Shown: piece after piece, positions 34,955 through 39,700 of the stretch
Layout of the letters: every line of letters starts with the position of its first letter
How positions within the stretch are numbered: position 1 is the first letter of the stretch
Source: Zancudomyces culisetae HAW-14-8
Lineage: Eukaryota; Fungi; Kickxellomycota
Direction: 5' to 3'
Length of the DNA: 64,000 nt
Assembly (NCBI GenBank): GCA_052426225.1
Contig: JBNJNM010000011.1
Span: forward strand, 4,898,001 to 4,962,000
Made by a program: the position numbers and the translations under genes
The notes under the pieces: generated by a model
Database searches by the model: none
Told to the model about the DNA's origin: nothing
Seen by the model: only the letters and a program-made list of their open reading frames with translations

Positions 34955-36328
34955 TTATGAAGAACGGAAATAATAAACTCTGCTAGTTTCAAATCCATTA
35001 AACTTTGAAGCAGCACAAACCGAATAGGCACCCAGATTGTTAAAGACCAACCAGTCACCCACAAACAGTTCGGGAAGTTCAACATTCTCCACCACACAAT
35101 CAATGGAGTCACACGTAGGACCCCAGATGCTCGATAAATACTTGGGCAGGGTTTCGGTGGCACGTAGTCCCTGTGCTGTATAGACAAATGCTGTGTTGCA
35201 TACCAAGACTTCGGGGTATACTTTTTGGTGGTCAAACATTATGCAGTTGAAACTACCGTATACACCATCGTTAATGTAATACATGTAGTTCTTTTGTGAA
35301 TTGACTACCTGATTCTGACTCTGACTCTCTTCCACTTCTTTTACAATTTGTCTTTTGGATGTCACATTTACTGCCAAAGTAAATGCCGATGCAGCAAAAT
35401 ACCTTCCAGGCTCTGCAATTACTTGAACGGATGGAAACTCTGAAAAATACTCATCAACAGCTACACTCAACCCTGCTGCTACTTGTGGAAACGGCATTCC
35501 ATCCCGTTGCTTGGATCCCGAAAATCCACCACCAACATCCAACAACCACAGATCCATCCCCAACTCACGAGCTTGGTCAAAGACCACCCGCGCACGCCTA
35601 ACCGCATCGGAGTAAGCATTGGGATCAGTACACCCACTGCCCACGTGGAAACTCACCCCTACCACATTGACTCCCAACTCTTTGGCTGTCTCCAACAACG
35701 TTTGCGTTGACTCCATGCGTGCACCAAATTTCAAACTCAGCTGACACAACGCTGATGAATCATCTGTTGAAACACGCAATACTGCTTGCGCATCTGGTGC
35801 CAACCTCCGGATTTTGCGTAGCTCGTCGGCATTATCAAACGTCATCAATCTAACCCCTTGTCGAGTTGCATAGCTGAGATGTGATGATGGCTTACATGGA
35901 TGCGCATAGATAATACGGTCTGGAGATACTCCAATGCTCAGCACCATATCCATTTCGTTACGGCTGGCACAGTCAAAGCCTGTTCCCAACTCGGCCAGGA
36001 TCCGCAACACCACCGGGTCTGGATTACACTTGACTGCATAGAATGGCTTGATTTTGGGCAGCAATTTGATCCATTGATCGTACTGCTTGTATACCTCGGC
36101 GACATCCATTGCGAAAAACGATGCCTCTGCCTCATTTTCTCCAACAATGTCTGCCAGCACTTGCTCTAGCCGCGTTCTTGAGGATACGTATTCTTCATCC
36201 ACATCCTTGAAGATCTTGGCCCCTGCAATCAACCCATTCCCTATCCCGTTTTCTGCTCCCAACAGCCCTTTGTGTTCCAGGTCCTTTCTTGCTACCATAG
36301 ATGCTGTATAGCCCTTAGTGAAACTCAT
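34955..36328 (-). CDS. SPE1: Ornithine decarboxylase
   Basis: PLP lysine motif PFYAVKCN, GFDCAS, SFHVGSG, LDVGGGF, IAEPGRYF, YYINDGVYGSFNC, catalytic WGPTCDSID and GAYS. The first ATG is at 36328 (MSFTKG); the ORF-track start at 36424 is a TTG. Confidence 0.97.
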   Translation of the reverse strand: MSFTKGYTASMVARKDLEHKGLLGAENGIGNGLIAGAKIFKDVDEEYVSSRTRLEQVLADIVGENEAEASFFAMDVAEVYKQYDQWIKLLPKIKPFYAVKCNPDPVVLRILAELGTGFDCASRNEMDMVLSIGVSPDRIIYAHPCKPSSHLSYATRQGVRLMTFDNADELRKIRRLAPDAQAVLRVSTDDSSALCQLSLKFGARMESTQTLLETAKELGVNVVGVSFHVGSGCTDPNAYSDAVRRARVVFDQARELGMDLWLLDVGGGFSGSKQRDGMPFPQVAAGLSVAVDEYFSEFPSVQVIAEPGRYFAASAFTLAVNVTSKRQIVKEVEESQSQNQVVNSQKNYMYYINDGVYGSFNCIMFDHQKVYPEVLVCNTAFVYTAQGLRATETLPKYLSSIWGPTCDSIDCVVENVELPELFVGDWLVFNNLGAYSVCAASKFNGFETSRVYYFRSS

Positions 36329-36549
36329 TATATCTTCTTGTTGTTTTTGTTGTTGTTTGTTTGTTTCCTCAAGTATTTTCCTTTTTGTTTTCTTATCCTT
36401 CCAAACCTTGGTTATTATCACCAAAATATTTCTCTTGACAAATTATGTATATCCACAAACAATCTAATAAATAGTATTATAATTCTATTTCTCTATATAT
36501 TCTATAATTCTCGCTTTTTCCTACACACCACGTTCTTGAGTTTGTCTTG

Positions 36550-36708
36550 TTATCCAAAAGCTTTCCAAGGTGGTTCTCCTAAAAAGTACTCAAGTCTGAT
36601 GTCTCCTTTGAACTTTAAATCCAACAAACCTGCTATTTGTTTTTTACTAACTATTCTGCTTTTCCCGTTCTGGAAAAGAGTGTCGTACTTTTTTTTAAAC
36701 GAGATAAT
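36550..36708 (-). promoter_or_regulatory. Non-AUG (probably AUU) initiated regulatory uORF of ODC (uCC), 52 aa, ending EPPWKAFG*
   Basis: Minus-strand frame IISFKKKYDTLFQNGKSRIVSKKQIAGLLDLKFKGDIRLEYFLGEPPWKAFG* contains no ATG. An in-frame TAA lies 11 codons upstream of the ATT, which sits in CCGAAA-ATT-A context. The stop is 221 nt before the ODC ATG. Confidence 0.85.
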
Positions 36709-39700
36709 TTTCGGTTTTCTTTTTTTTTTTGTTTGTGCTTATTCTCAAAGTTGATAATAATAATGTTTGATCTATTCAGACATTCCCCTGTTGTTTGGTC
36801 TCTTTATAAATCAGTATTATTCATTTACTACTTTGTATCTTTAAATATTCTTCTGTCTTACCCTTTATATCCTGTGAATAAAGGTTGTTTAATAATATTC
36901 TTTTAGAACTTGTTGTTTAAAGGAATGTTTTTTTTTCTTGGAAAAAAAATCTAGTGTGCAGTTTAAATTTTTCATGCTTTTTATATGTATTCAGTTTTTT
37001 TCAGGTGCAAAAAAAAAATAACTAGCGAGGGTATTGTAGACTTTTTTTTTTGATTCATTTCCGTTTGTTTTTTTTTCAATTTTAGAATATCCAAGTTTAA
37101 AAGCTTAAAAATGTTGGGCCTGCATCATTTTTCGGAAAATATACCTAGAAAAAACGTATTGGAAAAAAAAAAAATTTACCCATCCCGTTTTTTTTTTATT
37201 CATGGATATTTCTAAACTATAATTTTCCAACAATGACAAGGCAAAAAAAAAATTTTTTTCCCTCACTATCAACCTCGCCCTCCTCTTCCTTTCTTTCCTC
37301 TCCTTCAATCAGTTTTATCAACCTACTCTTGCATATATTTTCCCGTTACAAAATAAGAAATGACGGAAAATTTCCCAGGAATCCAAAAAATAAAATAAAA
37401 TCAAATCAAATAACCCCTCAAACTCATATTGGCGCTAAGGATGACCGCTACAAATTCCAAAAAAGGAACGTTTTTTAATATTTTTTTCTCGATTAAGATA
37501 GCTTGGAAAGTCTTAATGGCACCTACTTTCATTTCGCTAATAGCTCTTTTCTTTAGGTCTATTAAAAAAATATATATACAATACTATAATGCAAGAATAA
37601 AGCAAGCACAAGTGAATTATCCGTTTTTTTTGTGTTAATTTACAAATCACAAATCACTTGCATTCCTTTTTTCCACTCCCCCCCCCTTTCTTCCTCTACC
37701 CCTTTTTTTTCTTTTTTCCTTTTTATTTTCCTGCTTGCTTTATATTTAGTTTTCATGTACACGTTTACAAATCCTTTTGTTTATCAATTACTAAAAAAAT
37801 ATATAAATTAAATACTAGTTTTTTTTTTTTTCATTTGCTGCTTTCCCTTCTCTCCCCTTCATCTCTCCCTTCCACCTTCCTTCAGTTCCCATTTTCCCAT
37901 TCCTTGTTTTTTTTTCACCAATTTGTATGCTGCGCTTTTTTTTTTTGTGTATTAAAGTCATATTTCAAACCACTATTTTCCATTTATATAATTTTAGATT
38001 TGTTTATCCCGTTTCTTGGTTAAAGCAACCAAAAATTTTGTTTTCTTCCCTTCCACTAGTTACCTCATCTATTTACAATATGCAATATGCAAGGCTCTTT
38101 TTTTATTAATTGATGGCCATTATTAGCACCATTATTGACATCATTACTCAATGTATATACACATTTCCTTTTACTTATGGTTGCAAAAACGTGGGAGGAG
38201 TAAGAGGGTTTTTTTTTATTGAGCGGTTTATTTTTACATTTTTAAACAAAAACTGGGCTCTACTCAATCAGACTTTCAAACACAAATGCAAAAGCAAAAG
38301 CTCATTAGAAGCAGTAAATTAGTTTGCCGTCTTTTTTCACCTTATTCATTTTTTAATTCATCCCATCCGTTTTTTTCCCGTTGTGCACGATACACAACAC
38401 AGCTGATCAAAATATGGTAGTTTACTAGTAGCTGTGTCACACGTTTTATAAACACAGAAATCTGCGAATTACAATATGGAAAAGTACAAAAATTCCACTC
38501 AAAACCACGTACACCCTCTTACTCTAAGATAAACAACCACCATGTTGCTTGTAAATGCCCTTCTGTGCTATGTATTTGTACTTGTAGACTGACATCACTC
38601 CCTATTTCTATCTCTCGTTAATTTGTAAAAAAGGACACGTCATGCTCTGTATTAAGATGCGGTGGTGTTACCGGCTGCGAATCCAAAATTTCTTTGAGGA
38701 GGAGGAGTGGTTAAATAGCTCTGAGCTTTGTCGACTAGGAATCAATTTAGAATCTGTATTGGGTTGGGCTCAATCTCATCAATTTTTGGGTGTACACTTT
38801 CTAGGTTGTAATAGTTCAAGGTATGGAGGAGGTAGACTAAATGCTAATATTGCTTTCTATACCCAAGTGTAAAAACAGGTGTTTATTGCAACAAAAAATG
38901 TGTAATTTATCCAGGAATCCCTGATATAATGTCTTGATATAACCTACCATCACCATCTTCCACCCGTTTTTCTATAACTTTGAAACCACAGGAAACGCAG
39001 ATGTTGTTACACGCACCTCTCCTCTTCTGACCGTTCTCTTTTTATCTGCCTCGTTTGCGTTTCCTTTACGCGATTTATTCCATTTCAATTATTACATACC
39101 TTAACAAAAATAACCTGATGCAGGGTTAAAATATGATATGGAATAGTATAACAAGGAGAAGAGGTTCGCAAACTCTGAAAAAATGGAGAGAGTGTGTGGG
39201 GGGAGGGGAGGAAGCAGGAGGATGATAAAAATGACATTTATATTCAAACTACGGAAATTACAATATCCACCCATGAATGAGGTATTTTTTCTACTCAGGT
39301 TTCATCACATATACTTATGTGTATTTCAGTAACCAGAAATCTTGCATATCATACCACCTGTAGTTTTTTCTATCGTACGAATTCCCACAGGTCAAAGTTG
39401 TTGAAAGTAGTGTCACTTAATTTAATTGTGGCACAATTTACATTCACAAGGCTTTATAAATAGTTGTCAACCTATTTTTTGATATATATCTATTTGCTAT
39501 TTACTATGGAGCTATTTGATCAAATTATTTAAAGTCTAATTTCAAGTAGATTCCAATATCGACACAGCTTTCGGTGAACGTATATATTGTAAGATAAAGA
39601 AGTGGAGAGGCACGTAGGTGCAAGTTCCTTGAGTATGAAAAACTGGAAACTGTGTGTGTTGAATATACTATTCTATAGGAGATATTGTACTATTTACCCT

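Follow-up and report, generated by a model that had tools for sequence, protein, structure and literature searches.

Does the ornithine decarboxylase (ODC) gene of Zancudomyces culisetae carry, in front of its main open reading frame (ORF), one of the polyamine-responsive upstream frames known from the leaders of ODC homologues, or is the open frame found there an accident of an A-rich sequence? Such frames, termed uCCs, have been described for animals, Pezizomycotina, Basidiomycota and Zygomycota, with lengths of 22 to 100 codons ('as few as 22 codons in Zygomycota'); most of them start at a non-AUG codon, namely AUU, UUG or ACG, of which AUU is used most often, and adjacent prolines are found near the C-terminus of the encoded peptide (PMC2811004). 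Repression by uCCs is enhanced by spermidine and depends on the last 10 codons, and the animal and zygomycete examples have been viewed as independent inventions (PMC2811004). That article credits the class, Zygomycota included, to Ivanov, Loughran and Atkins (PNAS 2008). In the current model, PPW is the pause site, eIF5A the sensor, and the queuing of ribosomes back to the weak start the amplifier (PMC8705083; PMC10855120). A HiFi genome with RNA-seq has been published for Z. culisetae HAW-14-8 (PMC12611240), and the locus discussed here lies in a 64,000-nucleotide stretch of that strain, which was analysed as a whole and is called the window below. The first-pass annotation of this DNA proposed a uCC of this kind and described its mechanism as known in other lineages, which is borne out by the literature, as the class had already been reported, ODC leaders of 'Zygomycota' included (PMC2811004). 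The features on which the argument turns are as follows, in window coordinates.

34955–36328, minus strand: main ORF for ornithine decarboxylase, 457 aa plus stop, intronless, single copy
36329–36549, minus strand: spacer from the stop of the candidate uCC to the ODC AUG, 221 nt, without ATG
36550–36708, minus strand: candidate uCC, 52 sense codons from AUU to TAA (36552–36550), without AUG and in another frame than ODC
36565–36588, minus strand: conserved C-terminal core YFLGEPPW, an instance of the F(L/F)GxPPW motif of Harpellales ODC leaders
36573–36565, minus strand: PPW codons, predicted eIF5A-dependent pause site
36706–36711, minus strand: putative near-cognate start AAA-AUU with A at -3, present as AA(A/G)-ATT in 6/6 Harpellales
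36739–36741, minus strand: in-frame TAA that closes the frame on its upstream side
36329–36780, minus strand: ATG-free leader, 452 nt
36772–36824, minus strand: two tiny AUG uORFs of 7 and 4 codons including the stop, with starts at 36824 and 36783

When the minus strand was read again, every structural element of the first-pass description was recovered, that is, an AUG-less frame of 52 codons ending 221 nt before the ODC ATG, the TAA upstream of it and the AAA-ATT at its head. The ATT at 36708–36706 is the only one in the frame and is preceded by AAA, the C-terminus reads EPPWKAFG before the stop, and the offset of 380 nt to the ODC ATG (36328) places the frame out of register with ODC. Its position also fits the class, since it is on the same strand as the ODC main ORF and upstream of it. 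That ORF callers would be blind to such a frame is a point on which we agree, as gene callers do miss the element. The N-terminal basic cluster that had also been described is present in Z. culisetae, in a leader that is 46% A, and is absent from the relatives, so that it does not count as a conserved feature.

The identity of the main ORF needs to be settled, as its public name is 'Antizyme inhibitor 2'. The product of the ORF (36328–34958) and the public Z. culisetae protein share 99% identity and begin at the same ATG, the sole difference being a two-residue insertion (Ser-Gln) in the window copy. Alignment to human ODC showed that the motifs PFYAVKCN, with the PLP lysine, GPTCD, with the cysteine, GGGF and AEPGRY are all kept, which upholds the first-pass view of a catalytically intact enzyme with both Lys and Cys motifs; the loss of PLP lysine and active-site cysteine that marks antizyme inhibitors is not seen in this ORF. 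The protein matches human ODC at an E value of about 1e-130, compared with about 1e-97 for AZIN1, and the 27-Mb Z. culisetae genome contains no further ODC homologue, so the copy in the window is the single one. Given its intact catalytic motifs, its greater similarity to human ODC and the lack of a second homologue in the genome, the main ORF encodes ODC, not AZIN, and the public name is likely to be a mis-annotation. Among the database matches, entries of about 720 aa from a mayfly (Ephemera danica) and, labelled 'UNVERIFIED_CONTAM', from sturgeon exceed the Smittium ODCs in bit score with an identity of just 40–45%; these are probably tandem or fused ODC models.

The leader itself is conspicuous for what it lacks. 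Between 36780 and 36329 the first-pass annotation had noted the absence of any ATG as unusual, and this is confirmed, with none seen against 6.2–6.5 expected under a first-order Markov model (P(0) of about 0.001–0.002); the nearest ATG upstream of this 452-nt stretch is at 36783 on the minus strand, and the gap ranks 7th in length among the window's 2089 ATG-to-ATG gaps, both strands counted. Comparison was made among the ODC leaders of six Harpellales, namely Z. culisetae, Smittium simulii, S. culicis, S. megazygosporum, S. mucronatum and Furculomyces boomerangus, and together these contain no ATG where about 28 would be expected. The ATG-free span that holds the uCC and the spacer measures 437–1020 nt across the six, and the spacers of the five relatives, which are 87–353 nt long and cannot be aligned, are likewise free of ATG. 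As in the known class, no ATG lies between uCC start and main AUG in 6/6 of the leaders, and leaky scanning past a weak start depends on a leader free of AUG. This argues that uCC and spacer sit in a scanned leader rather than in an intron or a promoter, and from the ATG-free leaders together with the conservation of the peptide we infer that position 36708 is probably within the mRNA.

Upstream of the putative start the Z. culisetae leader has a peculiarity of its own. Its ATG-free zone extends just 75 nt beyond the AUU, and the two tiny AUG uORFs, with six and three sense codons, sit 75–116 nt upstream of it; the other Harpellales leaders are ATG-free for 180–547 nt upstream of their ATT. 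Either the transcription start site of Z. culisetae falls within those 75 nt, or the tiny AUG uORFs belong to the leader, the alternatives thus being a short leader before the uCC or mini-uORFs that have been acquired.

The first-pass annotation expected the frame, its AUU and its C-terminal motif to be conserved in related fungi, and all three recur, with synonymous changes, as FLGxPPW-type frames in 6/6 Harpellales leaders. Each of the five relatives (5/5) has an ATG-less frame of 40–48 codons which runs from AA(A/G)-ATT to NF(L/F)G(A/D)PPW, continues for 0–8 unconserved codons to a stop and ends 87–353 nt before the ODC ATG. Within the C-terminal core, F, G, P, P and W are invariant across the six, in agreement with the C-terminal conservation and paired prolines of the class. 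The window and each of the five loci contain the motif F(L/F)GxPPW a single time, always in the ODC leader, in a search space of about 209,000 six-frame codons, and even for PPW alone the expectation is as low as about 0.03 occurrences per 600-nt leader. An hmmsearch with a profile built from the five relatives ranked the Z. culisetae uCC top among 2589 six-frame segments of the window, with an E value of 3.8e-4 against 1.8 for the next segment; the relatives' frames had initially been picked by their PPW/PP pattern, so that PPW is in the profile partly by construction, which does not apply to the FLG context, the TL and S positions or the N-terminal Ile. The check proposed at first pass, a tBLASTN comparison of the peptide with related leaders, stayed at noise level: in pairwise searches of leader frames against the leaders of the relatives, the uCC gave E values of 0.02–0.07, no better than noise matches. 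Pairwise tBLASTN is too weak for peptides this short, and a profile or motif search is needed. On the comparative sequence evidence, the frame is not a product of chance.

Where translation of this frame would begin can be approached by asking where its conservation begins. In 6/6 Harpellales this is at Lys-Ile, encoded by AA(A/G)-ATT with A at -3, as expected for a start of this class, and the ATT lies 40–52 codons before the stop and 114–141 nt before the Trp codon. The Ile codon at this position is ATT in all six, while other conserved residues wobble. Upstream of the ATT, both the nucleotide sequences and the in-frame peptides are unrelated among the six species, and an in-frame stop is found 9–41 codons further up. 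The Rhizopus delemar leader has no such ATT and instead contains an ACG in strong context (ATC-ACG-G) 22 codons before the stop; the ATC/ACC-ACG-G block also occurs in S. culicis, F. boomerangus and Mycoemilia. An internal ACG or UUG start was considered for Z. culisetae and is not favoured, as the aligned position reads ATA-GCA and the TTGs nearby are in weak context. The AUU at 36708 is therefore the favoured start in Z. culisetae, and in the Harpellales the frame seems to have been lengthened at its 5' end, so as to begin at a new or additional start.

Beyond the Harpellales, seven further genera also have a frame with PPW or PP ahead of ODC, namely Coemansia, Mycoemilia, Dimargaris, Basidiobolus, Rhizopus, Mortierella and Gigaspora. 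Their C-terminal regions read as follows.

Coemansia spiralis leader frame: FFAGAPPW, followed by further codons
Basidiobolus leader frame: PEPPPW, followed by a tail
Mycoemilia leader frame: LGKPPP, followed directly by the stop
Dimargaris leader frame: LGDPPL, followed by further codons
Rhizopus delemar leader frame: ending G-F-PPW-L-S
Mortierella and Gigaspora rosea leader frames: PPW

Over all zygomycete leaders compared, PP is invariant (13/13) and W is present in 11/13, two species having PP but not PPW. The frames of R. delemar and Smittium share the series R-L-V...S-L-F...G-x-PPW, and R. delemar also has an I-T block with the ACG. At the level of motifs, the Harpellales uCC is homologous to the frame of Mucorales, the pairwise score being not significant for peptides as short as these, and the PPW element spans both zygomycete phyla. 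Two observations from this wider set deserve mention. The tails after PPW are alike in Basidiobolus (locus 2183–2398) and Gigaspora (locus 2309–2350), both reading PPW-x-x-C-S-L-G-x-x-stop despite belonging to different phyla, which hints at an older and longer C-terminal motif. In Coemansia spiralis, two ATGs (locus 2920–2940) fall between the PPW frame and the annotated ODC start, at 81 and 62 nt before the latter; either the annotated start may be wrong, or AUGs in the spacer may be tolerated.

Considering what kind of selection has kept these frames, the codons of the core residues are instructive. Phe is encoded by TTT or TTC, Leu by TTA, TTG, CTA or CTG, Gly by GGA, GGC or GGT and Pro by CCA, CCT, CCG or CCC, and over the 40 ungapped codons the mean pairwise differences at codon positions 1, 2 and 3 are 0.42, 0.45 and 0.57. 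A dN/dS below 1 had been predicted at first pass, and pN/pS is indeed below 1 in 15/15 Harpellales pairs, ranging from 0.46 to 0.99; saturation of the synonymous sites and the use of a protein-guided, hence biased, alignment leave these values as no more than moderate evidence for the N-terminal part. Constraint over the N-terminal two thirds is weak, with pN/pS of up to 0.99, and similarity between leaders at the nucleotide level ends directly after the TGG of PPW. As in the known class, it is the peptide and not the nucleotide sequence that is conserved, which indicates that a translated peptide has been under selection as far as PPW.

These data bear on three other accounts of the frame. 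That it is simply a chance opening in an A-rich, stop-poor leader would agree with the 46% A of this leader and with the noise-level tBLASTN scores, and is hardly credible given that PPW occurs with the same FLG context in 6/6 Harpellales leaders at the low expectation given above; the profile match, the depletion of ATG and the restriction of the motif to the ODC leader refute it. A conserved cis element that is not translated, whether an RNA structure or a protein or promoter binding site, and that is open in one frame by accident, could draw on the fold of the Z. culisetae leader as a whole (36329–36782, minus strand), which at -73.2 kcal/mol is somewhat better than that of dinucleotide shuffles at -60.6 kcal/mol (z = -2.8). 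Against this, different codons encode the conserved Leu, Pro and Gly, the consensus structure of the six species is negligible (-2.3 kcal/mol), an Rfam search of the leader returned no match, and the frame is open and ATG-free in all six species. The RNA-structure reading was rejected on the consensus fold and the Rfam result despite the single-sequence z value, and a cis element in general seems very improbable. A 7-bp stem, CUUGAGU/ACUCAAG, brackets the region from PPW to the stop in Z. culisetae and is not conserved in the five relatives. Equally improbable is splicing of the frame to the main ORF, whether as a 5' coding exon or as an alternative N-terminus that extends ODC. The frame is on the same strand just upstream of ODC and its peptide is conserved, as such an exon would be, but no species has an ATG in it, every Harpellales leader has a stop 0–8 variable codons after PPW, no conserved donor site comes after the motif, and ODC has a complete ORF that begins at its own ATG and matches the annotated protein and human ODC from the N-terminal region on. 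This reading, too, was rejected, on the missing ATG, the missing conserved donor and the completeness of ODC.

Of more substance is the suggestion that the frame is translated and conserved and yet damps ODC translation constitutively, or responds to a signal that is not polyamines, for which hypusine/eIF5A status, the supply of proline or tryptophan, or nonsense-mediated decay triggered by the upstream stop are candidate inputs. The structural evidence would fit any uORF with peptide-dependent stalling equally well, and polyamine dependence is known only for mammalian AZIN1. On the other side, uCCs are tied specifically to genes of the ODC family in many lineages, and in the loci examined the motif occurs nowhere but in the ODC leader; such ODC-specific occurrence fits feedback by the product of the pathway. 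We regard this suggestion as unlikely, though a good deal less so than the three accounts above. The reading that we prefer, and hold to be probable, is that the leader of the single ODC mRNA contains a genuine uCC, homologous to those of other zygomycetes and belonging to the ODC/antizyme-inhibitor class, with a predicted polyamine/eIF5A mechanism like that of AZIN1.

Under this preferred reading, most scanning ribosomes would pass over the weak AAA-AUU (36708) and arrive at the ODC AUG, since the leader is without AUG. A few would initiate at the AUU and translate 47 codons to PPW. High polyamines would interfere with eIF5A, so that the ribosome would stall while making Pro-Pro-Trp, and later scanning ribosomes would queue about 140 nt back to the AUU, leading to more starts there and fewer at the ODC AUG, with a fall in ODC synthesis as the result. 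Translation from the AUU, pausing at PPW and a response to polyamines are thus predicted for Z. culisetae by analogy with the known systems. We know of no fungal ODC uCC that has been tested experimentally. The genome holds eIF5A, deoxyhypusine synthase, AdoMetDC, spermidine synthase and antizyme, the last with the following position.

Contig 12, about 1046425–1047562: antizyme gene with canonical +1 frameshift site

ORF1 of this gene (129 aa) ends TGG-TGT-TCC-TGA-T, and ORF2, which matches PF02100, is open in the +1 frame.

How closely the Z. culisetae element resembles systems already described can be stated point by point. With the published ODC uCCs of 'Zygomycota' it shares an ODC leader without AUG, a near-cognate start and adjacent prolines near the C-terminus, and R. 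delemar links the two, its G-x-PPW end matching that of the Harpellales and its ACG 22 codons before the stop fitting the published minimum of 22 codons. It differs in that the Harpellales frame reaches 20–30 codons further upstream, to an invariant AAA/AAG-AUU, and totals 40–52 codons. The mammalian AZIN1 uCC (Ivanov et al., Mol Cell 2018; summarised in PMC2811004, PMC8705083 and PMC10855120) is similar in its AUU, its length of about 50 codons, PPW near the end, an AUG-free leader and an ODC-family ORF downstream, and eIF5A is the proposed sensor in both, in Z. culisetae by homology. The ends differ, the animal motif being PPWxxPS-stop (PMC10855120) while Z. culisetae has PPW-KAFG-stop and its relatives 0–8 unconserved codons after PPW. 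The main ORF differs as well, as an active ODC is predicted for Z. culisetae and AZIN1 is an antizyme inhibitor, and function has been tested in mammals only.

Two other kinds of polyamine-responsive control invite comparison. In the same genome, the +1 frameshift of antizyme provides a second translational sensor of polyamines with ODC as its target; it differs from the uCC in that it uses frameshifting, acts on the stability of the ODC protein and is encoded at a locus on contig 12. The uORFs of HOL1 and AdoMetDC are alike in that short peptides cause stalling on mRNAs of the polyamine pathway in dependence on eIF5A and polyamines (PMC2811004; PMC10855120), and differ in that they are initiated at AUG and stall at termination (Pro-Ser-stop or similar), with no internal PPW or queuing to a near-cognate start.

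In Z. culisetae the candidate uCC is unannotated, it has the sequence features of its class, and the lineage-specific AUU upstream is a modest new detail. Genomes of Harpellales and other Zoopagomycota were not in existence in 2008, and to our knowledge the Harpellales instances are unreported. The gain therefore lies in annotation and evolution rather than in concept, as the mechanism is established elsewhere; the range of zygomycete uCCs is extended to Harpellales, Kickxellales, Basidiobolus, Mortierella and Gigaspora, and the Harpellales leaders document what looks like a lineage-specific relocation of the near-cognate start.

As to the origin of the element, we put forward a tentative proposal, which is possible but on balance doubtful: the PPW uCC might be ancestral to Zoopagomycota and Mucoromycota (including Glomeromycotina) and perhaps go back to one origin together with its animal counterpart, instead of representing one of four independent inventions. 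Initiation in Harpellales would then have moved upstream, the internal ACG some 22 codons ahead of the stop being given up for an AUU at 40–52 codons. If this were true, the shift to AUU would converge on the spacing between start and pause seen in AZIN1, roughly four to five ribosome lengths, and would amount to a natural experiment on the queue length that the ribosome-queuing model requires. For the organism itself, the finding documents that an obligate fungus of the insect (mosquito) gut, with a reduced gene set, retains two predicted devices by which polyamines would act on ODC through translation, one being the uCC and the other the frameshift of antizyme.
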